This document shows, piece after piece, positions 6,088-59,717 of a stretch of DNA of 64,000 bases; positions within the stretch are counted from its first letter, which is position 1; every line of letters starts with the position of its first letter. Below the pieces are notes generated by a model. The model saw nothing but the letters and a program-made list of their open reading frames with translations. It did not search any database and was not told where the DNA came from. The DNA lies in NCBI GenBank assembly GCA_010909165.1, contig VJWM01000044.1:1922001-1986000 (forward strand), written 5' to 3'. Position numbers and translations under genes: made by a program. The stretch comes from Anthoceros angustus (taxonomy: Eukaryota; Plantae; Anthocerotophyta).

Positions 6088-7542
6088 TCATCCCTTGCCC
6101 TTCGGCATCTTTCGTGCATCAGCTGAAATAGACAGAGGAATAGCATGTGAGTGGACTAACAATATGGAAGCAAAAGTTTTCACCTCAACTCAAGTCAGCA
6201 GCGCAGATGCACCAGGTGAAAGCAGCCAGCAGAGGCAACAGTTTAGAGGAATTGAGCAAACTCCCACACAATCTACAAACTGGAGGCATTGGACAGGATC
6301 TCACCATCTTCGACATCCTTCATCTTGTGGAAGTAAGGGGCAAGTTCAATCAACCATTTAAGGTGGACCTCAATCACCTATGACCACGAGGCAGGCACTG
6401 GGATCACGAGAGCTTTGAACACTGACAGTTTAACCACGCTGGTTTGGAGGTCTTTTACAGAGTACTTTGCATGCCTGTCGTATGTATTCCTTCGTAGTGT
6501 ACACAAGTTCGTGATACCAAAACCCGGTGCGGCTGCACCTGACGGCAACATAACAGGACATGTATGGTAACATGGATGCTCATGTTGAAAGTTCACAAAT
6601 AGTGGACATACATCCCAGCTCTGTAGGACCAGAGCTGGGATGTATGTGAACGATTTGAGGGTTCTTAACTGAAATGTAGGACCCATTCTTCTGACGCTTG
6701 GCCGTATGGTAGAAGAAACCTGCCACAGTCACCCAACGTAAATCCAAGCCACCATCCAAGAACTGCAGCAGCATCCCAACTAGCAGGTAGAGATGCCTAT
6801 CTGATGCAATAGCCTTCTTTATTGAATCCAGATTGCTGTCACTTGACACCACTATTTCCACTCTTTCCAGCAATCTTTCCTGCTGTTCCCCGATGTCCCT
6901 TGCTCGCTTCATGCTGTCTCATAGCACCACTGAGTTGAGAAGTTGGTTTCCTTCCAAGTTTTGGAGACCTACATCAGCCAACTAAGGTGAGTCACTTCCA
7001 CAGGTAGTCACTGTTCACAATGCTATAACATTTCACCCTTTCAGATAGCAGTCGTGGCACACATGGTTTCAGTAGTGATACATGGAACACATTGTGTGCT
7101 AAAATGCATTCAGGCAATTGACCTTCAAGGGCGTAAGATGACCGCCCACGTTGCCAAAATGGAAGTTCGTCCGTGCATTGTCAGCATGCACCTGCTTGCC
7201 CTTGGGACGGTAGAATATTGAGTTGCCCACTGACAACATTGCAGCTCTGCTGAGGATCTCCTCAGAACAATTACATGTATCAGGGACAACTATCATCTTT
7301 GAAAGCATGGGCTCAAGACGAAACTCAGCCATCCCCCTTCCTAAATTGATTAGATCACCCCGATCATGCGGGAAAGCTGCTCAAAGGCCCATAACAGGCT
7401 CTCTACTGGAGGAGGGTCCATGAAGTCAAAGTTGACGAGATCATGAATGCCAAGGCTTTCCAACATAAGAACTACATTCCCCAGGTTTGTCCGCTGATTC
7501 TCAGGTACAGTGTGAGCATCTTTTTTCATTCTGGTAGGACCA
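6088..7542 (-). pseudogene. 5'-truncated duplicate of the DEAH helicase 3' end
   Basis: Matches helicase exons ([61 protein letters not shown]). Deletions and frameshift near 7365. No upstream exons; homology stops at ~7542. Confidence 0.9.
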
Positions 7543-7804
7543 GAGTGCATCCCTGCTCTTCCATGGCTCACCAAACTGATTTCAGCGAAAATCCACGCGA
7601 AATTTGAAGGGGAGTATATGTTCCACACTTGCTGTTCCTGCACTCTACTGCAGATTTTTCATGACTGTTATAGTAGGTCCGTGCATGTGGACGCCACGTC
7701 TTGTTTTCCACTGCAGCCTCGCGCGGTGTTAAAACGAAACGTCTCCACCGTGATAGAAATTGTATACGTTCAAGACCACATAAGCTCACCGAAATGATAT
7801 ACGG

Positions 7805-7921
7805 GAAATTTATCACATTCGTGATTTGCCTAAGCTCATGGTTATGGATTTGACCGGAAACAAGTTATGCCGAGCTAATGACTATAGGACTTACACCATA
7901 TTCTCTCTGAGGAAGCTCAAG
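7805..7921 (+). pseudogene. Isolated exon of an SDS22-like LRR / LRRcap protein (LRRC9-like by recollection)
   Basis: Frame EIYHIRDLPKLMVMDLTGNKLCRANDYRTYTIFSLRKLK ends exactly at a GT donor (7922). The LDLxGNxLC...YR.Y.I..L..LK pattern is an LRR plus LRRcap. Confidence 0.6.
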
Positions 7922-8589
7922 GTTTGTTACCACATTTTTGTCCTGTTCTTGTTGCCTTGGTACGAGAGGAGTCACGTTATGGTTCGACGAGCGAGGGGAG
8001 ACGCGGGATAGGTACTGTTGTGAGACGCCTGATAGAGGCCACTGATGGCCTGTTCACATCGGAACCGGGCATGCTGCGTAGACTCGCCGTAAAGATCGGG
8101 CGAACCCCGTCTTTTTCGGTTTCTTTAACCAAACGATAAGGTCGATACTGCGCAGTAAGGCGCAGGACCGGGCCGTGGTCACGCAGGGCCGAGCTGTGGT
8201 CCCATGACCCGTGATGTTATGGTATTAATATTATATTACAAAAATAGCATCGTGAGGATGCAAGAGGCTCGTCTTCTCATTTTCAACGTCGCTTTCTGTT
8301 GTGTGGCTTGTTGTGTTTTCGCTCCCTTGGCCTTGTGTCTAGACCTGGCCTCGTGTGTCTTGTCCTTTGTTTGCTTGGGGTCATGGATCCATGTTATTTA
8401 ATATTTTATTTGGTTTTTTCATGAAATCTTATGTAGAATGCACGGATCTACCTATGGATGATGGTATGATGAGTAATGATGGATGTTTTGGTATTCCTTT
8501 AATACCTTCATTGGTTGGAGTGTACTTCTTTCACTGGGATATTGAGCAGCAGTCTTGTCTTCAACGAGATTTTGGTGGACGTTTCCGCG

Positions 8590-9397
8590 CCAAAATACAA
8601 CTTGGAGTTCTTTACACATGCTTGCTTGGCACCTTATGGGGCAAAAACACTTTGGATGCACAATGGAGGAAGGAGTATAGGATGGCCTACTCAACTTTCA
8701 AGCTTTTGGTGGAAGAATTGCGTCCTTACATCCAAAAGAAGTCTAACAGGCCACCTCTACAACTTGAGCTTGGAGTTGCCATGGTCTTGCACAGGTTAGC
8801 TTATGGAGCTGTACCTGTGTTGTCGCTAACACCTATGGAGTTGGACCATCCATTGTGACAGAGTATACCAAGTTGATTACTAGCATCCTTAGTAATCCAA
8901 TGAAGTTGGCTTCAAAGTTCATCAACATGCCAAGTGGCCAACGACAACTACCATGTGCAGACAAGTTATTGGTTGACAACACCAATATTCGGCCTTTTTT
9001 TGTTGGTGATAGTGCTTATCCAATCATGCCTTTCCTCATGAAGGCATATGATATACCATGCGCACCAGACAAACAAAGGTTCAATAGGAATCTGCACAAA
9101 GGAAGGGTGAAAATTGAAAATGCATTTGGGAATTTGAAGAACAGGTGGAGTATTTTGAAGGACATAAATGTGGCTCTTCCTTATGTGGGACAAAGTGTAG
9201 TAGCTTGCACAGTGTTACATATTTTTTGCATCATGCATAAGGAGTCTGATGTGGCAAATGTGCTGGAAAATCCGGACCCTTATCGCATGCACCATCAGCC
9301 ATTTTATTTGGAGAATGCCATGGAGGAGCAGCTTCAACGAGTGGGCAACGAACAAAGACAAGCATTGTTTGAGTTTTTGATGAATACAAATTGTTGA
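8590..9397 (+). mobile_element. PIF/Harbinger DDE nuclease (DDE_Tnp_4-like), frameshifted and internally deleted
   Basis: W..EYRMAYSTFKLLVEELRPYI, VAMVLHRLAYG, VGDSAYPIMPFLMKAY, FN.NLHKGRVKIENAFGNLKNRW.IL, ACTVLHIFC are HARBI1-type motifs. The central DG segment is missing. Confidence 0.85.
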
Positions 9398-44367: not shown

Positions 44368-46602
44368 TTAAAATTCAGATTGAATGATTGGAATTTCCTT
44401 AACTTTAAGAGGCGTACATGCTGATATGCTATCTCGCATATCTGTGGGATGAGGTGTTTGAAAAGCAAAAAGTCGTATTTGGTACCTTCTAATTTGTTTA
44501 AGCATGAGGTTGGAAAGAGGTAACCATGTAGGAACTAAGGATGTTGGCACCACAAATCCATTGAACAGGGATGTGTCACAAATTTGAAGAGACTTTTTAA
44601 TATGCACTAAAGCACGACCAGTCTCAATTGAGTTCAATGATACAGAGTTTTCTATGCATAATCGAAGTAACTCAAAATACTCTGTGGGTCCAAAGACGCC
44701 TCCGGACTGCAAGAGATATGACAAAAAAGATTAAAATATATATTTCCATAAAATAAAAATAGAATTATTGATATTACCTCCACAACTTGTCGTATATTGT
44801 TAAGTATAAATAGTTCTTTATCGCTCGGCTCCCTTTGATTCGAAAACGATATATCAATCAACTCTTCGTACCATCGATGTTTTTCTAATGCTTTTCGAAA
44901 GGTTTCACCTTTTCGAGGACTTGCAGGCCCCCATTCTGCATTCCGAGCAGATTGGGAACCCTGCCAAAATTTTCTTCAACTCTTAAATAGTTTTTAATAT
45001 TTTTATATAAAAATTAAATATTTTTTGTATTCATTTAAACCAAAAAGGTTTTGATACTTACATTCAAAGTGGAGTATCGATGCGAATAAGTATAATATCG
45101 AACTATATTCAATGATTTGAGTTCTTGGAGAAGGTGCAAATTAAGATTATTTTGTAGTGATGTTGTATCTGTTTGTCTATTTAAAATAATGCCTAGTTGT
45201 TCTAGACTGTTGTCCTCACATGCTTTAGAAGGCATGTCATTAAAAGATCTTTGAGTGATAAAACCTTGGGATAATATTTTAGCTGCTAATTTATCTCGTT
45301 CTGAGGGCCATGAATAAACCTCTGGTATATGATGCTCAATAGAAGTAGATCTGTTGTGATTTCATTTTTTTTATATCAATATTTGGATACTGAAAATATA
45401 CCTCTATATACCTTCGCAAATGCAGCACATCTATCTATGGAAAAGAGATTACCTAGTTGATGTAGGTGTTGTTGGTCCTCGAGTGCTACCTGCTTCCTTA
45501 TAACGTGCTAAGATGTTAGCGTTAGCTTCCAAGTGTTGGGCATTGCTGTAACCTGAAAGAATACTTAGACGTAATGGTGGAATGTATGGTCTGTTTCGTT
45601 TTTTGTTTTCCACTTTCATCTTTTTCTTTTCTTTTTGCATTTCTTGGGAATGTGATCTTATTCCCGTTAAAAAATATTGACCGTTCCTGCACTTAACTGG
45701 TTGTTCCACAAATATACAATTAGATTATTTTAAATATTTAATTTTATTAAAAACTTTATACAATATAAAATTTATTTTTTAGTGCTTTATGCTAGGATAG
45801 GTCTTATATTTCAAAATTTTCTTCAAAGTGTGTATAAGATTGGTGTTCACTTTATTTGTTAGCAACAACATCCTCCAAAAAAATTACTGTAGTTACCACA
45901 CATTTTTCATTCAAACGTACCGAACATTTTTAAGTCGTTCTTGAGATTTTAAGATTTCGTGATTGAGAGCATTAAATCCACTGGAAGCATGAGCGCCAAG
46001 TGCACTAAAAGGGGCACCACACCAACGCTCTCCATTCCAATAGCTTCCTTTAAATCTCATAGGTAATACTATAGCTTGTTTTGGAGGCTCTACAACATCT
46101 TCCAATTCAGGCCAAGGTTTTGTAACTTTTAGATACTCTGAAGGAGGCCTGTAAAATTGATACTTTTTTGGTAGACGTGATCGATCTCTCCTCAAATCAG
46201 GTGTGCCTATAGTGTTCAAGAAAAAGAATAATAATTATTATAATTAAGATCAAAATAGAAATAAAACAACACTTTGTAATAGCAAAATGCATTATTACCT
46301 AAGGGCCGGTATGGAGCGGCTCGTGCAGAACATAACCCTTTCTCTTTGAGCTGAGGCAGCTCTAGTTGGTGTTCAATGTTAGGTACAGACCATTCATCAT
46401 TTCGAGGTATGTAGCCATATTCATGTGCAACATATTGTACCCAAGCTTCTGTCAACAAAGGTCTTCCATCTAGACCTAATATAAGCCCATGATCTGAGGT
46501 TGAATCACTGGAACATGCATCTGCGGATAAAACTCGTTGATCCACATCGGACGCTAGTTTACTCTTTGGATTTGTATCATCTGAACCCACAACTTCTTCC
46601 AT
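44368..46602 (-). CDS. Uncharacterised ~544-aa protein, 6 exons, AT-rich
   Basis: Exons 46602-46299, 46206-45921, 45686-45453, 45350-45062, 44960-44778, 44706-44368. All five introns are GT-AG with matching phases (1,2,2,0,0); total 1635 nt with no internal stop. No family recognised. Confidence 0.75.
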
Positions 46603-46642
46603 TTTTGGAAGGTTCCTCAACGTGGTCCTGAAGGCAAGCTTT

Positions 46643-46744
46643 TCACACAAATCCAGCCATTCCAGCCCACCCACAGCCGGCGGAGCCAAAATGTGATCTA
46701 GGAAAGAGAGAAGGCGAGGTTTTGTAAGATGGAGTAGCAAACAT
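46643..46744 (-). promoter_or_regulatory. Candidate 33-aa uORF (MFATPSYKTSPSLFPRSHFGSAGCGWAGMAGFV*)
   Basis: ATG in GCCACCATG context, stopping 41 nt before the ATG proposed for the orphan gene. Confidence 0.35.
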
Positions 46745-47257: not shown

Positions 47258-50200
47258 ATGAGCGAGGCGCGGCGGGAGCGGGTGCAGGTGGTGGTTCGCT
47301 GCCGCCCGCTCTCGGACAGGGAGATTGCCGACGGTCGGCAGAGCTGCGTGCACGTAGACCCCCACCGATGCACGGTGCAAGTTCGGGGTGGGCGGCCCGG
47401 GGAGCAGACCACCAAGCTCTTCACTTTCGACAGGACGTACGACCCTTCCTGCACGCAGCGCCAGCTTTACGACGATGTTGCGCACCCCATTGTGCACAGC
47501 GTCATGTGCGGATACAACGGCACGGTGCTGGCCTACGGCCAGACTGCCTCTGGCAAGACCTTCACCATGGAAGGCTTGGAGGATCCATCCGGTAAGCCTG
47601 GGTTTAGGGTTACCATGGCTGCTGCATGTGGCTGATGCATGTGGCTCATGGCGGCGGCATCGTGTGCAGAGATGCAAGGCATCATACCCAATGCGTTTGA
47701 TGACATCTTTGCACATATACAGCAGAGTCAGAGCTCAGATCACTTCCTGGTTCGGGCTTCGTATCTCGAGATCTACAATGAGGAGATTCGGGATTTGTTA
47801 GCTCCGGCAGGCACACATTCCAAGTTGGAGCTGAAGGAGAGTGCGGATGCTGGAGTGTACGTGAAGCACCTCACTTCTCTTACTGTGCACAGCGTGCCTG
47901 ACATCCGTCGCCTTCTGATGGTTTCATATCTACTCCATCCCATCTTCTCCTGGTTAGGATCTATAAGCCTTACGTACTGGAGTTAACCTAAGGGACTGGA
48001 AGAATTTGAAGATGGCAGGAAGGGAGTCAAGCACTGTAGCTCTGCAAAACGTGCAGTTAGGAGGTAGATGCATTCTTGCTGCTAGAGTGTCAGCGCACCC
48101 AGGGCCCTTTCATCTTCTCAAGGTCGAGCTTTGTTGTTGGATGGAAAGAACCTCGTTTTGTATTAGGGGATGCGGAGTGTGAGGATTGCTACCACCCTGA
48201 GTGTAGATGTTTGCATGAGACAGGCTGATAGGAAACCCACGTCACTCTGTTTCATTGGAAGTTGCTGCTTGATGACTGCAGCTTCCTTAAATCACTGTGT
48301 TCTGTTTCAGGTGGGCAAGAAAAACAGGTCGGTTGGAGCAACGTTGATGAACCAAGATTCATCTCGTTCACATTCAATATTCTCAGTCACTGTGGAGGCC
48401 AGTGCACGACCTACTTCAGATTTGGATGGAGCGATGCATATTCGTGTTGGAAAGCTGAATCTTGTAAGTCCTGCCACGTTCTTGGATTTTGCCCAGGTTT
48501 TGACCCACCTTGGATGCTGACTGTTGAGGAAACGAACCAGGTTGATCTTGCTGGGAGCGAGAGGTTGAACAAGACAGGAGCAACAGGGGAGAGGTTTAGA
48601 GAGCTGACCAATATTAATTGGTCTCTTTCAGCCTTAGGGAATGTCATTTCAGCTTTGGTGGATGGCAAAAGCTCTCATATACCTTACAGAGACTCCAAGT
48701 TAACCAGACTGCTTCAGGACTCACTTGGTGGAAACACCAGAACAGTCATGATAGCGAATATTGGCCCAGCTGACTACAACTATGAGGAGTCCATCAGTAC
48801 GTTAAGATATGCTAATCGGGCCAAGAGCATAAAGAATAAGCCCCGCATCAACGAAGATCCTAAAGATGCCATCCTTCGGGAATTTCAGGAGGAAATTGCG
48901 AGGTCTGGTCTCGTAATTCCAGTACAGCACTGGGTTTTCTGCATCACACAAGCGGACTGCTGAGTTGCTAGGTTGTTGAAGTGATGGTTGGCTCTTCAGG
49001 CATGCCTGTATAATGATGTTCTACATGCATGTATACAGGCTTAAAGCACAGTTGGAGGCAACCAGCAGTGTGGGTGACGAAGCAGCAGCTGCTCAGGCTC
49101 TCCCCGTGGAGCGTGATAGTGCTGTAAGTCCTGAGGTTCTACAGCAAATCAAGGACCAAATGCGCCGTGATATAGAACTCGAGACTTGCCTACGACAGTC
49201 CATGAGTGAACAAGCAATGGCCTGCATCAAGGCTGACCTAGAGCGTAAGGCAAGACTACTTGAACCCAGGCTTCTTGTATGCTATATGAACCTATGTCCC
49301 TTTGGTCGAGCTTTTTGGTATAGAAAGTGATTCAAATTAGTCATGAGCTAGTAATTTGCCTGATGAAATGGCTGTGCGATTGGCTTGCTCCAGAAAGTGA
49401 TATGGACGTCTCTATTGCTGTTGTATTGTATCCATTGTCCTCTGACGTGGTTTCTCTCCTCTGTCTCATCCTACTTCTATTTTCTGGCTTGCTGGTGCCG
49501 CCTCATTCTGATTGGCTCGCTTCATGTCACTATGTTGTCCAATCTTTCACTTCTCCATCACACTTTTTCTTCCCTCATCTTCCTTCATTTTTACAACTGC
49601 TTCTCCTGGGTGCTCTGAAAGACAGATGATGGCTCGCATTGGTGCAATAATCCCAGCCTTTTTGCTGAATGCTAGTCCTGGCAGAAGCATCCACACATGC
49701 CACAGATGCTCAGCAGCAGGCTCTTGCTGTGCACTGTCAAGAGCTGCTGCACAGCCTTTATTGGAACAGCAAGGTCTTGCACAGCCTGGAAAAGAGCATA
49801 CCGCTCGATTCTCAGCTGCTGCGGCCGCTTTGCAGGCTTTAGAACTGTCACTCCTATGTGAAGATGACTCCGATTTTGTCCGACAAGGCCAGGAAGCCCT
49901 AGCAACAGCTTGCCTTTGTTTCTCTAAAGCTTCTGTTGCTGCTGCCCTTCCTGGTTCCCAAGTCAGTAGGGTTGGAACTAGGGAAGAGAGAAGAGTAGAT
50001 CCTTCCACAGCCAAAATTACTGAAGATAGTGCTAGCAGAGATGAAGGTCCTGAGCAGGAGAGTCATCTTCCTGACACACTGCCCCAGCCTGTCTCTGCTT
50101 TGGTGGGACAGTTGCTTGAAGCGATGGAAGCACATGTTCAGAGGAAAACTGAGAATAACACTATGGCATATACAAGGAGGGAACCCGTGAGAGAGACTGA

Positions 50201-52715
50201 GGATACTGTTTCCCTCCCATTTTCCACGTGCAACTCCCTTCTTGCCCTGCTCTCCCCTTTCCAGTCCTCTACTTCCTCTCTTCCTCCTTTCGTTGTTGCG
50301 CAGGAGCCCGAGCTTTCAGGTCAAACTTCGCAACATTTCGCAAGCGATAAGGCAATGCATATGTATGCGCACTTATATCCCTATGCGGGTTTCTTCGTAG
50401 ACGGGGTCACAGATGCTGGCATCCAGGTTGAAACATTGAAAAGTCCCACCTCAGATAAGGAATCACAAGTTGATGGCAATCAACCGGAATACTCTTCGTC
50501 TCCTGATGCCTGCACATTTTCAGGAGATGATGAGCAGTTCAGATATAGCTCTGTGATATCGACTATGGATACCTCCTGTCCAGGGGCTTATTTCCAGCAT
50601 TCTAATGCCGTTCAGTTTGGCAACAGTGATCCTCACTTCTCAGGGTGCTTTCCCACGCAGTACGGTGCAGCGATTTCTGAGAGGGATGTACTTGAGATGT
50701 TAAGGGACATGCAGTGTGAAGGAAACTTGTCAGGAACTTCTATGCCAGGCAAATTCATTTTTGATGACGGAGATCCTTGTCTCAATTTAGATGGGTTACC
50801 CCTGGGCGACCGAAATATGTTTTTCAGACGAGCCTCTCGCATAGAAACGATGCTGAATGTCAGCCCGCTTGAGATGCGTCAGCAGTTGCATATCCACCTG
50901 CGCATGTAGCATCAGTTGTTTTTCTTTCTTGTCACATGTAAGGTGTTGAGATAGTCTGAACGTAGGGAGTTACAGGCCAAAACAGTGACAGGAGAACTTG
51001 GACAAGTTGTTGTTTAACGATCGGTTATGTCACATTCATGAATATGAAAGATTAAGATTATGTTTTACTGCTTTAACTTTTCTGCTGTTTCTGTAACACA
51101 ATTTGGCAAGTTGCATGTGCACCGGTTTTGTGAGTCGATTGTGGTTGTTGCCGTTGTTGCTGATTGATTTTCCAGTGACTTTGTCGTTCGTGTCGTCCCT
51201 TGCCAATGATGTAGAACTACCTAGCCTCCTGCACCTGATGATAATGAGGGCTTGGGGACCTATGAAGGATTGCAGGCTCAACTGGAGATAGAAGCCTTGA
51301 AAGCAGAGAAGGAAAGAACAGAAGATGAGAAGCAAAGGATATCTGAACTGCTCCAACAGCAGCACAAGGAACTGCAGTCGCACTACCAGGTAACTACATG
51401 CTTTGTGCGAAGCGAGCCTTTGATGCAAGCTAAAACATGACAGCGGAAATGAACCGAGAACACAACGCTTTCCAGGCTTTGGCCAAAGAGAAAGAGGATA
51501 GGGACCTGTTATCGATCAAGCTCAAGTCCCTAGAAGAGAAACTACTGCATGGAGAAGCCACAGACAATGCGAAGTTGATAGAGAAGGCTAGGCAACAGGA
51601 GCAGGAGCTTGCGCTTCGTGAGCAGCAGCTTCACGAGCAGCAATGCCGCGACGAAGAACGGCGGAGAAAGATAGCGGAACTAGAAGTAAGGCTTCACGTC
51701 AGAGACAATCCAGTGTCAAAAAGCAGCGTTACGGTTTTGACTGGGACGAAAGGCCTGCCTTTGTGCTGTGGCCATGCTTATCTGAACATTCAGCAGATAT
51801 GAAACTGTAGGAAGCACAGCTCATGGCTGAGGAGAAATGTAGCACTATGGAGGAGGAAGTGGAAGTCAAAACCCGGAAGCTACGGAAGCTGATGGCCCGC
51901 TACCTCCAAAGCAAGCAGGAGGTTTCAACCATCAGAACAGAATTACAAGACACGATTCATGAGTTCCAGCGAGAGAGGACAGATTTGTTTTTGTCACTGA
52001 GGTCTTTAGACCAACAGCTCCAACTGAAAACTTTCATCATCGAGGTAATCACATAATTTGCAACACCACCTCGTCCATCCCAGATTCTCTTTTGGTATCT
52101 TATTCTTTACCGCAAAACACTATACATTACTGTTACAAAATCTGAATGGCCGCAGAATTTCATCCCAGTCGACGAAGTCGAGAAGATTACCAGACGAGTA
52201 CACTGGGACGAGGAGTCGGAGTCGTGGGTTTTACAGAGCATGTTATTGTCAATGCCATCTCGGACTGGGTCAAGATCTTTCATTACGGATGGCGTCAACC
52301 TCAAGCAGCCACTGCAGCGACCCCCTTCAGCCACTGGAAGAAGCAGGCCCATTTGTCGCCAAGCTGCTGAAGCCATTTCGAAGGGCGACAGAGATCCTCG
52401 CTATCTGTAAGCCACATTTCCCTGTAGCTTTACTGATCAGCACATGTGAGACACCCGACCATGTCCTGAGACGTAAGCACTTGCTGCTACAGGGTGGACA
52501 ACATTCTGAAGTTGGAGCTAGACATGCCAGAGAGATCCACATACGACTACGACAACGCTGAAGACAGAGCAAGGGCAGAGGCTGATGCTGCCCTTGCACT
52601 TAGCGCGTTCGATGATGACGGGCCGTATTTCTCATACGAGTCCACAATACCCCCTGTTCGTCCCAAGTCCGCCCGCAGCAAGCATCATCCCCGCCCGAGA
52701 ACAGCGGCTGGATAA
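47258..52715 (+). CDS. KIF3: Kinesin-2 (KIF3/FLA10-FLA8-like, intraflagellar transport motor), multi-exon
   Basis: [106 protein letters not shown]. Kinesin-2 tail [20 protein letters not shown] and [17 protein letters not shown]. Confidence 0.93.
49626..50909 (+). CDS. Intronless 427-codon ORF inside a kinesin-2 intron (nested gene or alternative terminal exon)
   Basis: Stop-free frame 49512-50909. ATG at 49626 directly follows CAG and a pyrimidine-rich tract. Lies between kinesin exons ending ~49249/49276 and starting 51276. Confidence 0.55.
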   Translation: MMARIGAIIPAFLLNASPGRSIHTCHRCSAAGSCCALSRAAAQPLLEQQGLAQPGKEHTARFSAAAAALQALELSLLCEDDSDFVRQGQEALATACLCFSKASVAAALPGSQVSRVGTREERRVDPSTAKITEDSASRDEGPEQESHLPDTLPQPVSALVGQLLEAMEAHVQRKTENNTMAYTRREPVRETEDTVSLPFSTCNSLLALLSPFQSSTSSLPPFVVAQEPELSGQTSQHFASDKAMHMYAHLYPYAGFFVDGVTDAGIQVETLKSPTSDKESQVDGNQPEYSSSPDACTFSGDDEQFRYSSVISTMDTSCPGAYFQHSNAVQFGNSDPHFSGCFPTQYGAAISERDVLEMLRDMQCEGNLSGTSMPGKFIFDDGDPCLNLDGLPLGDRNMFFRRASRIETMLNVSPLEMRQQLHIHLRM

Positions 52716-52899
52716 CCAAACAAGTGGGCATGATTCGGTTATTTCAGAAAAAATCCTGTCCTCAAAATGTCATGGAGCGAACACGGGCATAGAGCAATAC
52801 CTAATGCCCTTTTCCCGAATGGCTAGGTCTTGATGAAGCTGCCGCGCCCCTCAGATATCCATTCTTCAGTGCGAGTCGAACTTCAGCTCATGCAGATAG

Positions 52900-53230
52900 T
52901 CACCTCTCCTAAGAGCCGTACTTCTTCCGTTCATAGATGAGAGAGGTTTTCGCAGATCCAAAATTCACAAATTTAGGAGAACCATCTCTGTCCTTCTCCT
53001 GCTGAGTACACTCCTTGCATGAGTGAGCATCCGAGATTCCCAAACCACCGCAGATGACACACCTCCCTTGGTAGGATCCGTAGTTGCACTCTTCACAAAC
53101 CCTAACCAGAATGCAAGGGCGAACACAAGAATCACAAACCACATACCTTACCACACTTCTCGCACAGTCTTCCTTTTGCGATACCAGGCTGTTTGCGGCA
53201 CATGATAAGGTCAGGATGATGCTTCGCCAT
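52900..53230 (-). pseudogene. PHF5A: PHF5A/RDS3 (SF3b14b) pseudogene, intronless
   Basis: [26 protein letters not shown], then a frameshift, then [54 protein letters not shown]. Cys>Ser in DGCPK and a premature TAG at 52909. Confidence 0.9.
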
Positions 53231-53344
53231 CTAATACAACCTCCCCTCGCCCCTTCTTCACCGACCTACGCATGGAAAGAACAACGAAGTATAACAGACC
53301 GCAAAACCCTAAATGCCAGAAATCACAGGAAACAGCAAGCAAAA

Positions 53345-54135
53345 ATATATGCTGCATGGTCTGTCCCAAAGAGTCATCGCGGCGACGCCGCACTCCAGGG
53401 CAATGGAATATGCTGCACTTCAACTCGGAGGCATACAGAAACCCTAAAGTCCCAGAATGCCATCAACAAGCAAGCTTCAATGTATGACGTTCATGCTGAG
53501 CTTTACGGCACAAACAGCCGCCTCGATGCATGGAGGTGACATCTGCCAAGAGTGTCATCCTTCGTCAATCACGAATATCTAGCCTAACGGCTGAAAAAAG
53601 GTTAGACTAAAGATACAAATGCATGCAAATGTAGACAAATGTATGCTGCATGGTCATTCCCAAAGAGTCACGGCAGCGACGCTGCGCCCCAGGGCAATGG
53701 AATATGCGGCATCAGGGTTCGGAGGCATACAAGGATCGTGAACTTCCCGAAAGCCATCAACAAACAGACTCTATTTCTGACGTTCATGCTGAGCTTTACG
53801 GCACAAACTGCCGCCTCGATGCATGGAGGTGACATCTGCCAGGAGTGCCATCCTCCGTCAATCACGAACATCGAAACCTAACCGCTGGAATGACAATCAA
53901 AGAAACATGTTTGCCGCATGGTCATTCCCAAAGAGTCATGGCAGCGACGCTGCCCTCCAGGGCAATGGAATATGCCGCAACTGGGTTCGGAGGCATACGA
54001 GGAGCGTGAACTCCTCAAATGCCATCAACAAACAGACTCTGTTTCTGACGTTCATGCTGAGCTTTACGGCACAAACAGCCGCCTCGATGCATGAAGGTGA
54101 CATCTGCCAGGAGTGCCATCCCCCGTCAATCGTGA
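53345..54135. repeat. Diverged tandem repeat, ~270-295-bp period, 3 copies
   Basis: Recurring ccaaagagtca.ggc.gcgacgc...cagggcaatggaatatgc and gacgttcatgctgagctttacggcacaaac.gccgcctcgatgcatg blocks at ~53350, 53640 and 53910. Confidence 0.9.
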
Positions 54136-54423
54136 CACCACAGACAAGCAGGCAAGGGAGACATTTACCTCAATCCGATCGCAACACCAACTCACAGAGA
54201 GAACGGGAGACAGCATGCTCAAGATGGTGGAGCTCGAGCGGATTATGTAGTGTCCAGCAGCATACCCTAACCCTAATTTGGCAGATGACAGAACCTCGAG
54301 TCCCTGCACTGCATGTTATCACATGGCAAGAGACGTGTATGTATATATACGTACACAGTAGGAAGGAGGGATAACAATGTGGCGTCGGCAGGAATTGCAA
54401 ATGCAAAGGTGAGTGTGCCGAGT

Positions 54424-57400
54424 TCACGGCGAGCTTTGATGGAGTCTGACAAGGGAAGCATAGGATCCAGCATTTCGCTTGAGAGTGTCGTGGGAACCGA
54501 GCTCCAGGATTTTGCCATCACTGATGACGGCGATGACGTCGGCATTCCTGACTGTAGAAAGGCGATGAGCCACCACGATGGTGGACCTGGCGACCATGAT
54601 CCGCTCCAGAGCCTCCTGCACCAGCTGCTCGGACTCGGAGTCGAGAGCGCTGGTGGCCTCGTCCAGCAGGAGGACCTTGGGGTTCTTGAGGATCACTCTG
54701 GCGATGGCGATGCGCTGCTTCTGGCCGCCGGACAGGTGGCGGCCCCGCTCTCCCGCGGGGGTCTGGTAGCCCTGGGGCAGGCTGGCTACGAAGTTGTGGG
54801 CGTTGGCGGCCCTGGCTGCGGCCTCGATGTCCTCGTCCGCGACTTGGCCCTGCTTCCCGTACGCTATGTTCTCCCGGATGGAGACGTTGAACAGGGCCGG
54901 GTCCTGGCTCACCAGCCCTAGCTGCTGCCTCAGCCATTTCAGCCGCAGCTTCCTGATGTCCACGCCGTCCAGCAGAACGTGGCCCAGGTCGGGGTCGTAG
55001 AACCTCTCCATCAGCGAGATCACTGTGGACTTGCCGCTGCCGCTTTCGCCCACTAGAGCTACTGTCTGGCCAGGGAAGGAAGGATCCGGAGCATGGAGGT
55101 GAGTACGGTCATGGGCAGGTGAGATGCAAGAGAGCATGCAAGGGCAGGTGTTGGAGGAGGCTTACTTGGCCTGGTTTCACTGTGAGGCAGAAATCTTGGA
55201 AGACCTGCACATCTGGGCGGGTCGGGTAGCTGAAGGAGATGTGATGGAACTCGATGTGCCCTTTCACGTCTTTCAAGATGCTCCCTGAGGTGTCGGAGGA
55301 GTCGATTTTGGAGCTCCTGTCCAGTAAGGCGAAGATGGAGTTTGCCGCTGTCTTTGCTCTTGCTATATCAGGGGCCAGCCCCATGGACTGCGCAACACCA
55401 AAGGCCGTGCACACGATGGAGAAGAACACCTGTGCAGCAAGGTGTTTGTGTGTGAGGCAGGTGTGCGAGCACATGACACATGACATGGTGGTGGTGTCAA
55501 GAGTGGTGGTCTTACGGTGAACATTTGGTTGAAAGTGGTCTTCCCTTCCCGCACAAGATGGGCACTCAGCCAGAAGATGAAGGCATTGCAGCCATAGGTG
55601 GAGAAGCTGGAGATGGCAAGACCACTTCCACTGATCAAACCTTGGCGGATACCGCCTGCCAACGGTAGTTTACACTTGCTCTGGTACAGGGAAGACACCT
55701 TGTCCTCAGCACAGAAGGAGGCCACGGTTCTGATGCTACTCACGGCTTCATTCGCCAGTATACTAGCATCCTCGTACATAGCCTGGCATGGCATGAACAT
55801 TAGACCAGGAAGAAGGGGGAGAGGGCAGTCGTTGTGAGCGTGTGGAAGAATGCTACCTTGGAGTCCTTGCTGTGGCCCTTGAGAAGCTTGACTTGCATGT
55901 AGGTGCCGAGGCCCAGAAGGGGCAAGATGGCCAACATGGAGCTGGAGAGCAAGAAGTTGGAGAGAAATGCAATGAGAAGACCTGTGAGCACAGCAGCTGC
56001 ACTTTCCACATAAGTGGACAGAGCATCTCCGACCATGCTTCTCATCCGTGCTGCGTCTTGCGACAGCCGAGCTCCAATGGAACCCCTGCCACCAGCAATG
56101 TAGAGATCGTGACCTGCAAGCCTTGCTGACTAAGGAGGATGGGGAACGGGGAACCTTGTGAGGGAGACTAACCCCGAGCTCTCTTTCTCGTCAAACCAGC
56201 CAACCTCTTGCTGCAGTATCTTCTCGAAGATCAACAACCTGATCCGACGCACAAGTCCATTACCAGCCACGGCGAAGGAAAACATTTGTATGGGACACAC
56301 GAGAAAGTTCCCGCAGGCAAGGACCACCAGCATGATTGCCCAGAAGCTTGCATCCTTCTTCATGTGATGAGGGTCGTTTCCAAAGAAGGAGATTATGAGG
56401 CGGCTGAAAATAAGCCCACACGTCGGCAGCAAAGCGCCATGCACAGCAGCCGCCGCCGAACCTATCACGAACATGGGCGTCTCCGGTCTATTCAAAGCAG
56501 CAAGGCGGAGGAAGTATCTCCTCTTCGGGATGACTGTCGGCCCGGCCTCCAGATCATTGTCAGACGCAAAGTCAGCTTCAGCAGGGATGGCTCTTGGGCA
56601 GCTGCTCAAGATGATGTTGGAGGCACTGTTGGTGCGGGTGTGGCTGTGGGAATGGCTGCTGCTGGTTCTGCTTAACACAACTTCTGCACCAGCCATGGTA
56701 GATTCCGCTTCATCACCGACGTCGTCGTCTCCAGGGGGTTCTTCCTGCACATTTTGATGATGAGCAAGCTGGCTGTAAGCGCCATCACTTTTGCTCAGAA
56801 GCTCAGCATGTGTCCCTGTGCAACCGTGGATGGGAACTCAGCCAAGTGTCCAGTCTGCAACTAGATGGAAGGTTTAGAACAGAGGAAAGGTAGTTACCGA
56901 CCCTGTTCAACGATGGCTCCCTGATGCATCACAGCAATGTGGTCGGCAGTCCTTATGGTGGTGAATCTGTGAGCCACTATCAAGGTAGTGCGGTCGCACA
57001 TGATCCTCTCCAAAGCCTGTTGAACCACCCTCTCGGAAGCAGCATCCAGAGCACTGGTGGCTTCATCCAGGAGCAGGATCCGAGGATTTTTCAAGATCAC
57101 CCTAGCAATTGCTATCCTCTGCTTCTGTCCTCCAGACAGTTGGACTCCATTTTCTCCCACCTGCGTGTTGTAACCCTGCACATAGATTGCTTCTTTCAGG
57201 ACCGGAGCAACAGAAGACAGCATCCATCCCTACCCACGAGTCCACCGAAAACCTACTTGTGGCATTTTGTCGATGAAGGTTGCAGCGTTGGCAAGCCTGG
57301 CCGCAGCCATGATCTCCTCACCGGTGGCGCCATCCTTCCCGTAGGCGATGTTCTCCCCGATGGTAGTCCCGAAGAGAACAGCCTCCTGACTGACCAACCC

Positions 57401-59717
57401 GATCTGCTGGCGCAACCATCCCACTTTCATGGTCTTGATATCGATTCCGTCCAGGAGCACCTCGCCTCCTTGCGGATCGTAGAACCTCTCAATCAGCTGA
57501 ATGATAGTGGACTTGCCGCTGCCACTGCCCCCCACCAAAGCAGCGGTGCGGCCGGCGGGAATCTGAAACGAAAGCTTGGAGAAGACGGCAACCTCAGGCC
57601 GAGCCGGGTACGAAAAGTCCACATCCCGCAAACGGATGTCGCCCCTGACGCTGGCAACCGAGATCCCGGCCGGGTCGGCCGCGTCGATCTCAGGCCTGCG
57701 GTTGATGAGCTCGAAGAGCTTGTAGGCGGCCGCCTGCCCTCCTGCGAAGGTGCTGAAGCAGAGGGACGCCTGGCCCAGGGCGCTGCCCACAACAAGGTCC
57801 TTCAGCTTCAGGTCATGATTCCCGCAGCCCATGGGCAGTGCAATCGCAAATGCAAAGCATTCCCTCCCCTCTGAGGCTCGCTCACCTACCACCGATGACG
57901 ATGGAGAAGAAGACGGTGATGATGGTGCCGCCGGTAGCGCTGCCATTGACAGCCAGCCTGGAGCCGTACCAGAGGGACAGGGCGAAGGAGCCGTAGGCGA
58001 AGAAGCCGACCAGGCCCGCCCCAAAGCCCGACGCCAGGCCCTGCCGCACGCCCACCTTGTACGCCTTCCTCAGCGCCCTGTCGTAGGCGCCCACCGTCCG
58101 CTTCTCGCCCGTGAAGGACATCACCTACAACACCATCTCTGCGACGCTGCAATCAGCTCAACTTCCTGCTGCCCTTGCCCCAGAGCTGCGGATGCTTCAT
58201 AGCTGGCAGAGAGTGCCTACCGTTCTGATGGCCCCGATCACCTCCACCACCACCCTGCCCGCATCGCTGTAGGAGGCCTGCCCGGAGGTGTCGAGCTTGG
58301 AGATCTGCGACGCCGTGGTGGCCCCGAACGTGACGATGAGCGGGATGGTGGCCAGCAGCACCAGGCTCAACTTCCAGCTCTTGGCGAAGGCCAGCACCAT
58401 GCCGCCCACGAATGTGGTCATGTACTCGATCACCTTGCCCACCTGCGCCGGCGTCAGTTAAGTTGGTTAACCTGGTCACCCACCGCCCACCCCAGTCCGG
58501 GGCCTGGGACTCTCCCGTTGTTTACCTTCTCCCCCGTTGCCCTCTGGATGGAGGCCGTGTCCCCGGACATCCTGCCAAGAACCTCCCCACTCGTGAGCTC
58601 CCTGTCGAAGAAGGACACGTCCTGCCGCAGCAGCGCCTTCAGGTACTCGCTCCTGATGCGAGCAGCCTGCCTCTCGCCCGAGCACATCCAAAACGCCACC
58701 TCTGCATTCCACCCTCCACACCATCATCCAACGTGTCTACCTCATAGACTCTGAAGCCCTAAGAGCGAAATACGAGGACATGGGCATACCACAATATCCG
58801 CCTATTGCAGCTGCCATGGCCACAAACACGTAGTGCACAGTTGCCTGCACCGCACGACGTGGAGCAATTCCATCGAGTTCAGCTTAAAGGAATCATGTTG
58901 CAACACACAACAACACTCCACCCAGGGATGGCCGACCTTGCTTACATACCTTGGAGATTTTTGCGACCAGGGCATGGCCGTCGATGGGGGTCTTGGCCTT
59001 GACGTCCCCGAAGGCGTCGGTGACGGTCCCGAACACGAGCACCACCATGATCTGGCTGAGCCCGTTGATGACAGCCCCGGCGGATCCCAAGGCCATGAGC
59101 GCGAAATCCAGGCTGTCTGCGAAGGCGAACAAGCGGTAGAAGGGGGCGGAGCCAGAAGAAGGTGCGGCCTCGGGCTTGGACGCCGGCCGCTTCGGGGCGG
59201 CCACGTCGTGCAAGCCGGGGAAGGGGCCATTCAGAGTGCTCAGAGCCAGGCCCAGCGCTCCCAAAAGCTTGCTTTTGGGGGACTTGGCAGAATTGATGCC
59301 CTCGCCATCGGATGCGGCATCCGTTTGCAGCAGCACCGGCTTGATGGACCGGATCTCGCTCAACACCTGCTCCACCAGCGGGGTGTGCGAGATTTCGATG
59401 TCGATGAAGCTGCCGTTTGCAGTGTCGGTGTCGTCCCCACTGTTGCTGTTGGAACAAGAGCCATGCTCCTGCTGCTGTCCCTCCTCCCTCGGCTTCCTGC
59501 AACTGTCCAGGACCAGAGCGTCTTCTCCTCCTGCGACCTCTTCGTCGGGCTTCCTGCAACTGTCCACAACCAGCGCGTCTTCTGCTACTGCAACGTCCTC
59601 GTCGGCCAGAGGCTGCGATTCCGCTGCAGCAGCGTCCTGCTCGATGTGGGTATCGAGGATCAAAGCTTGAATGCTGCTGTCGTCACGCTCGGCACCAGCC
59701 CCATTACCATCATTCAT
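54424..59717 (-). CDS. ABCB: Full-size ABCB (P-glycoprotein/MDR) transporter, multi-exon
   Basis: [14 protein letters not shown] start; two NBDs with [12 protein letters not shown] / [41 protein letters not shown]; plant ABCB4/11/21-like TMD2 ([22 protein letters not shown]). Start MNDGNG is tentative. Confidence 0.93.

Follow-up and report, generated by a model that had tools for sequence, protein, structure and literature searches.

Four kinds of described system come close to the arrangement considered here, in which an intronless open reading frame (ORF) of 427 codons lies within an intron of a kinesin-2 gene of the hornwort Anthoceros angustus. The stretch analyzed (the window) comprises 64,000 nucleotides of contig VJWM01000044.1 (assembly GCA_010909165.1, positions 1,922,001 to 1,986,000 of the forward strand), and the coordinates given below refer to it unless another contig is named. 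As in nested intronic genes, a complete coding sequence with its own start and stop sits in one host intron, its placement is conserved between species, and the host mRNA needs the nested gene removed. Unlike in those genes, the ORF is on the same strand as its host and on transcripts continuous with host exons, and its protein belongs to no described family; moreover, the host genome is compact with short introns, and the nested gene fills most of its host's one long intron. In the fern Marsilea vestita, retained or detained introns gate translation during spermatogenesis (Boothby et al. 2013, cited in PMC4947347), and a single kinesin-2 is reported for Marsilea and for Physcomitrella (PMC4947347). 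The present locus resembles the Marsilea system in that one specific intron of a sperm-flagellum gene stays in otherwise spliced transcripts, one kinesin-2 gene having been examined here, and differs from it in the presence, within the retained intron, of an ORF that is protein-coding and conserved. A third comparison is with kinesins whose tails and cargo binding are altered through alternative last exons: here the frames would fit together, and the ORF is preceded by a pyrimidine tract and a CAG resembling an acceptor, but no corresponding junction occurs in the RNA contigs. The candidate exon opens with ATG-ATG, which is conserved, and all RNA seen carries it unspliced. Finally, polycistronic nuclear mRNAs are known in green algae (PMC7896298), with leaky scanning given as their mechanism (PMC11291117). 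Provided that the functional RNA is the one that retains the intron, the likeness would lie in a single capped transcript bearing two ORFs, whereas the upstream ORF here comprises about 445 codons of kinesin motor and the host is a land plant.

Our preferred reading, to which we assign a probability of roughly 0.55, is that the ORF is a lineage-restricted, intronless protein-coding gene that is sense-nested in the only long intron of kinesin-2 and whose translation starts at a conserved ATG of its own. Purifying selection acts on the intact ORF in its own frame, its position, ATG-ATG start, and stop are kept at a synonymous divergence (dS) of about 1, and four data sets show its transcription from the + strand. 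These RNAs have neighboring kinesin introns removed, while the 2-kb intron is left unspliced either in full or at least over the 349 nt before the ORF. The intron is divided as follows, omega being the ratio of nonsynonymous to synonymous divergence (dN/dS):

49277..49625, + strand: leader between the kinesin donor and the ORF; non-coding, 349 nt, 39% T, several upstream ATGs, retained in every RNA contig seen
49626..50909, + strand: nested intronless ORF, orphan protein family; 427 codons, ortholog P0001, omega 0.25 in frame, 3-nt indels only
50910..51275, + strand: trailer; non-coding, either the nested gene's 3' untranslated region (UTR) or the remainder of the intron, ending at the conserved acceptor TGCAG|GC

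The ORF starts with ATG ATG (49626-49631) and stops with TAG (50907-50909), on the same strand as kinesin-2 and in a frame without stops from 49510. A word search of 5.8 billion proteins recovered an ortholog, P0001 (435 aa), that shares 57% amino acid identity over the full length. P0001 is encoded on contig L001 of a second species, between the orthologous kinesin-2 exons and in the same intron; the question raised in an earlier note on this DNA, whether the ORF stays intronic in kinesin-2 of a related genome, is thus answered in the affirmative for L001. At the DNA level the motor exons are 75-77% identical to L001, the ORF as a whole 70%, and the tail exons 67-68%. Intron sequence flanking the ORF hardly aligns, and amid this otherwise unalignable DNA the 13 bases at the ORF start, CAGATGATGGCTC (CAG|ATGATGGCTC at 49623-49635), are identical in both species. 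The second ATG of the ORF has A at -3 and G at +4. When the ORF was compared with its L001 counterpart by the Nei-Gojobori method (415 aligned codons), dN/dS was 0.25 at a dS of ~1.0, with values of 0.17-0.36 in every 70-codon slice, and the differences at first, second, and third codon positions numbered 92, 86, and 193. Shifted frames of the same alignment gave omega values of 1.43 and 1.53 and contained 14-33 stops, such that the dN/dS check suggested in the earlier note returned 0.25 in frame versus 1.4-1.5 out of frame. The ORF value is close to that of the kinesin stalk exon preceding the intron (0.22), the stalk exon following it having an omega of 0.05 and the motor exon one of 0.009. 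Because selection acts on its own frame (omega 0.25), the ORF is probably translated, and on comparison of the two sequences a 427-codon frame that is open in two species at dS ~1 is far beyond what chance would be expected to produce. Contigs of runs X2 and X9, which are 93-97% identical to the window, served as close relatives. Their indels within the ORF are of 3 nt (49937, 50042), and 1-nt indels occur in its flanks and in kinesin introns (49275, 49396, 49432, 51071, 51712, 51743, and 52121). Mismatch density in these relatives is 3.3-3.9% in the ORF, 6.3% in the contig covering the leader (49301-49789), and 2.0% in the motor exons. The possibility that the ORF is an in-frame cassette exon was rejected, as its stop is conserved and no in-frame donor follows it.

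Evidence for transcription came from assembled contigs of four data sets (X1, X2, X9, and L002) that represent three or four species or strains. No listed run is recorded as RNA, and the spliced joints prove that X9 is RNA. Contigs can drop rare isoforms and their depth was not used to rank isoforms; the samples are probably vegetative, which means that a sperm-specific isoform could have been missed. In X9, which contains the joint 48900>49037, one contig (49037-49765) crosses both the donor at 49276 and the ATG at 49626 unspliced, and another spans 49888 to ~51217. X2 is represented by contigs 49301-49789 and 49863-51138, without any kinesin exon, and X1, which is identical to the window, by a contig that passes the donor unspliced (49162-49315) and by pieces of the ORF. 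L002, a 2,471-nt Logan contig of the second species from a neighboring run, was reached via P0002, the other member of the P0001 cluster, and equals L001 6591-6952 joined to 7046-9157 at 100% identity. With the exons on either side of the long intron designated N and N+1, exon N-1 is spliced to exon N in L002 (GT..AG, 93 nt removed) and is followed by the whole 2-kb intron with the ORF and by exon N+1 up to its donor. Neither the donor nor the acceptor of the long intron gives rise to a branch in L002, which ends at exon borders on both sides, and this intron is essentially unspliced in the sample. One intron kept while its neighbors are spliced was seen in both L002 and X9. The ORF-bearing RNA is from the + strand because the same contigs carry a + strand GT..AG splice, and an antisense origin was rejected for this reason. 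No joint from 49249 or 49276 to 49626 was found in X1, X2, X9, or L002, the contigs passing both sites unspliced. A search for isoforms with the neck region (product of L002:3-716, residues 118-200) returned only P0003, a genomic read-through product, in a collection that seems to omit genes touching contig ends, so that this blank says little.

The host gene comprises the following exons:

47258..47593, + strand: kinesin-2 exon 1, N-terminus of the motor; ATG at 47258 inferred, 3' end approximate, 86% tblastx identity to L001 5289-5642
47663..47856, + strand: kinesin-2 motor exon; 5' end approximate, RNA joint 47856>48311 (GT..AG), 86% tblastx identity to L001
48311..48463, + strand: kinesin-2 motor exon; RNA joints 47856>48311 and 48463>48541, each GT..AG
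48541..48902, + strand: kinesin-2 exon N-1, motor end and neck linker; PF00225, RNA joint 48900(+2)>49037(+2), omega 0.009 versus L001
49039..49276, + strand: kinesin-2 exon N, stalk start; phase 0 at CTT|GT, 72% amino acid identity to L001, omega 0.22, conserved donor and in-frame 3-nt indel
51276..51389, + strand: kinesin-2 exon N+1, putative coiled-coil stalk; phase 0 at either end, 82% amino acid identity to L001, omega 0.05, acceptor and donor conserved
51437..52715, + strand: remaining kinesin-2 exons, putative stalk and tail; conserved blocks ~51473-51712, 51802-52047, 52135-52299, 52303-52410, and 52491-52715, which are block limits and not splice sites

The Pfam model for kinesin (PF00225) matches the motor exon at 48553-48927 (E 6.8e-41) and likewise matches the orthologous exons of L001. 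Among solved structures in the PDB, the motor exon scored highest against KIF3B (199 bits) and OSM-3 (198), followed by KIF3C and a Giardia kinesin-2; kinesin-1 reached only 139 bits and the rest were lower, giving kinesin-2 a lead of ~60 bits. By these sequence comparisons the host gene is closest to KIF3/OSM-3 and is assigned to kinesin-2, and the central observation of the earlier note, a 427-codon intronless same-strand ORF (49626-50909) in an intron of such a gene, was borne out. Downstream of the long intron, conserved blocks probably continue the stalk and tail through 51276-52715, each in a single frame, and the tail-exon blocks have 71-92% identity to L001 by tblastx. The reading of 51437-52715 appears to match tail motifs of the KIF3 type (NFIP..., LELDMP). 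RNA contigs bear out the introns at 47857-48310, 48464-48540, and 48903-49038, all of which are GT..AG.

The intron that hosts the ORF (49277-51275) measures 1,999 nt, and the other introns of the gene range from 47 to 454 nt. The earlier note had put it at ~2 kb, which holds, and all others under 400 bp, which does not, as the intron at 47857-48310 is 454 nt by its RNA joint. Two phase-0 ends had been proposed for the preceding exon. The one at 49276 (CTT|GT) is a donor common to L001, with an in-frame 3-nt indel just upstream of it; the other (AAG|GC at 49249) is unneeded, since coding conservation runs on to 49276. A third candidate donor, GTAAGG at 49245, was rejected because it is absent in L001 and its phase 1 fits neither acceptor. 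On the 3' side, the phase-0 frames noted for the acceptor at 51276 and for CAG|ATG at 49626 were confirmed, with both strings, TGCAG|GC in the case of the acceptor, conserved in both species. The leader is scarcely alignable to L001 and its substitutions lack a codon pattern; in close relatives 1-nt indels occur in it at 49396 and 49432, and another is placed behind 49275, where exon and leader meet. An extension of the protein to an in-frame ATG at 49524 was rejected, as that codon is not conserved and the substitutions there show no codon pattern. The TGA that closes an 88-codon upstream ORF (uORF; 49363-49629, + strand) shares bases with the ATGATG at which the nested ORF starts (aTGAtg). 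Neither this uORF nor the further upstream ATGs at 49279-49532 are conserved in L001, which carries upstream ATGs of its own. The trailer aligns poorly to L001 except in its last ~13 nt and has a 1-nt indel at 51071 in close relatives; the Anthoceros-like RNA contigs stop within it at ~51138-51217, and L002 runs through.

Pfam gave no match to the ORF protein at E<=1, the word search of 5.8 billion proteins and a HMMER profile of the two proteins run against 1.84 billion representatives each returned P0001 only, and the ESM Atlas held no usable match for the whole protein or for residues 40-215. The ORF has apparently never been called or annotated, because its exact protein sequence is absent from a collection of 15 billion proteins. 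Judged by these searches, it would represent an undescribed family that is apparently restricted to hornworts. AlphaFold2, supplied with an alignment of two sequences, gave a predicted local distance difference test (pLDDT) score of 30.6 and a predicted template modeling (pTM) score of 0.19 with a few predicted helices, a model too poor for a fold search. The protein looks mostly disordered and has, towards its N-terminus, a helical block that is conserved. Conservation is highest in residues ~58-117, a central helix, and the C-terminus (RRAS...SPLE.RQQ.HIHLRM), the last of which had been called conserved-looking from the window sequence and is indeed kept in P0001. Residues ~58-117 include an LxLxL string that may be EAR-like, which we regard as a lead and not a finding. 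Hallmarks of transposable elements (TEs) were sought by Pfam (E<=1), by terminal repeats, and by copy number in the 64-kb window and L001; there were no TE domains, no terminal repeats beyond short chance repeats, and no second copy of the ORF. A TE origin was rejected on these grounds, in agreement with the earlier note, which had recognized no TE motifs.

Under the favored reading, the protein would be made from the ORF's own start codon, and the nested mRNA would probably begin within the kinesin gene near 49277-49600 and probably end before 51276. Full-length kinesin-2, which should be needed only for sperm flagella, would be made when the whole nested gene is spliced out from 49276 to 51276, and any one transcript could then yield only one of the two products. 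The nested-gene model accords with the conservation of the initiation context, with selection specific to the frame, and with X2 contigs that lack kinesin exons, and the independent nested gene offered as one option in the earlier note agrees with the conserved start and stop, the omega of 0.25, the intron position kept across species, and the transcription. Several observations weigh against this reading. No transcription start or polyadenylation site of its own was seen for the ORF, in assembled contigs that cannot show RNA ends, strand, or levels. The ORF contigs of X9 and L002 are continuous with spliced upstream kinesin exons, that of L002 extending to the end of exon N+1, and this continuity implies that some of the ORF-bearing RNA is an intron-retaining kinesin transcript and not a separate mRNA. 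At least six upstream ATGs, including the 88-codon uORF, precede the ORF, an awkward feature in a 5' UTR. A filter artefact could account for the missing kinesin exons of X2, and such a hole proves nothing. The support is at the level of DNA and RNA.

If the ORF lacked a separate promoter, it would be present only on intron-retaining kinesin-2 transcripts, which might be bicistronic (a truncated motor and neck ending at the stop at 49328-49330, then the ORF) or might be stored or detained until the intron is removed at spermatogenesis, as in Marsilea. We regard this as unlikely, although less so than the other alternatives. L002 joins spliced exon N-1, exon N, the entire intron, and exon N+1 with no branch at donor or acceptor, X9 is continuous from the 48900>49037 joint into the ORF, and there are precedents both in fern spermatogenesis, where removal of retained introns controls translation (Boothby et al. 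2013, cited in PMC4947347), and in the polycistronic nuclear mRNAs of green algae (PMC7896298). Yet the selection on the ORF frame (omega 0.25) is unexplained if the transcript merely stores kinesin mRNA, and X2 has the ORF region without any kinesin exon. Leaky scanning is expected to need a short upstream ORF and to fail past ~445 codons of kinesin motor, and ribosomes are not expected to reach the ORF behind an upstream ORF of that length and many AUGs. Somewhat less likely again is a locus with two outputs, in which vegetative cells keep the intron and produce from the ORF a hornwort-specific, largely disordered protein, and spermatids either remove the intron to yield the flagellar motor or splice at 49626 to yield a motor with a new tail. 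Were this correct, the choice between two unrelated proteins would depend on how one intron is spliced.

The earlier note had also proposed a tail-swapping alternative last exon, in which 49276 would be spliced in some cells to CAG|ATG at 49626, removing an intron of 349 nt and fusing the motor and neck to a 427-residue tail with new cargo specificity. In each of the two species the boundaries are both in phase 0 and the ATG comes right after CAG; the segment 49277-49625 is T-rich (39% T), has a pyrimidine tract at its end, and is similar in length to other introns of the gene, its removal would splice the upstream ATGs away, and the ORF contigs of X9 and L002 are physically continuous with upstream kinesin exons. 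Against these points, all four RNA data sets run unspliced through 49277-49625, and the 49276>49626 joint is absent from every one of the assemblies, whose contigs cross both sites unbroken with a mean depth before the ORF about equal to that of the ORF contigs. No protein of 235-747 aa that joins the kinesin neck to the ORF was present in the searched collection, in which RNA products of hornworts are very few, and the conserved double ATG in good initiation context would be unnecessary in a purely internal exon. We consider this proposal improbable; because the frames fit and 49277-49625 looks intron-like, it would be possible only as a rare or sperm-specific isoform, and the idea of a kinesin with a swapped cargo-binding tail is not supported at present. 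Least probable by far is that the ORF is not a working gene but a frame open by chance, the remnant of a decayed transposon or retrogene, or non-coding intron sequence that is conserved. A homolog in one related species only, the lack of a domain, and the pLDDT of 30.6 would be compatible with such an origin, but it is already largely refuted by a frame that is open in two species at dS ~1.0, an omega of 0.25 in this frame only, indels that inside the ORF are in frame only, transcription of the ORF, and a single copy in the window and L001 without TE hallmarks.

Few orphan genes have been characterized in this plant group, to which the ORF, as a sense-nested gene, would add one that is conserved, expressed, and lineage-specific. 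The arrangement is unusual in that a nested gene on the sense strand is co-transcribed with its host, and in that a flagellar motor gene, which should be needed only in sperm, retains the intron around the nested gene. Hornworts are transformable, and the locus could be a test case, within a compact plant genome, for how nested promoters and the retention of introns interact with expression of the host gene.

The surroundings of the kinesin-2 gene were also surveyed. Convergent with it on the minus strand lies a PHF5-like splicing-factor gene (52912-53154; PF03660, E 2.5e-25), which has a minus-strand intron after its stop (52708-52800; CT..AC joint 52707>52801 in RNA contigs). Its long, high-depth 3' part covers the tail exons of kinesin-2 in antisense, reaching 51972 in X1 and 51281 in X9, and a natural antisense overlap with the 3' half of kinesin-2 is possible. 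Synteny with L001 stops right after kinesin-2; at L001 10600-14800 an nsLTP-like gene (PF00234) and a DYW-type PPR gene replace the PHF5 and ABC genes, and the antisense overlap is not shared with L001 because other genes occupy that position. Upstream of kinesin-2 and head-to-head with it, the minus-strand region 44368-46740 contains blocks conserved versus L001 (66-77% DNA identity, 45055-46496). On the other side, a 268-nt unit is repeated 1.8 times at 92% identity (53639-54131), within a region (53080-54370) that encodes several similar short ORFs, e.g. '...SFPKSHGSDAA.QGNGIC...'. Beyond it, a multi-exon ABC transporter gene of the ABCB/MDR type occupies 54424-58024 on the minus strand and encodes two nucleotide-binding domains, with a PF00005 match on the exon at 54427-55137 (E 9e-33).

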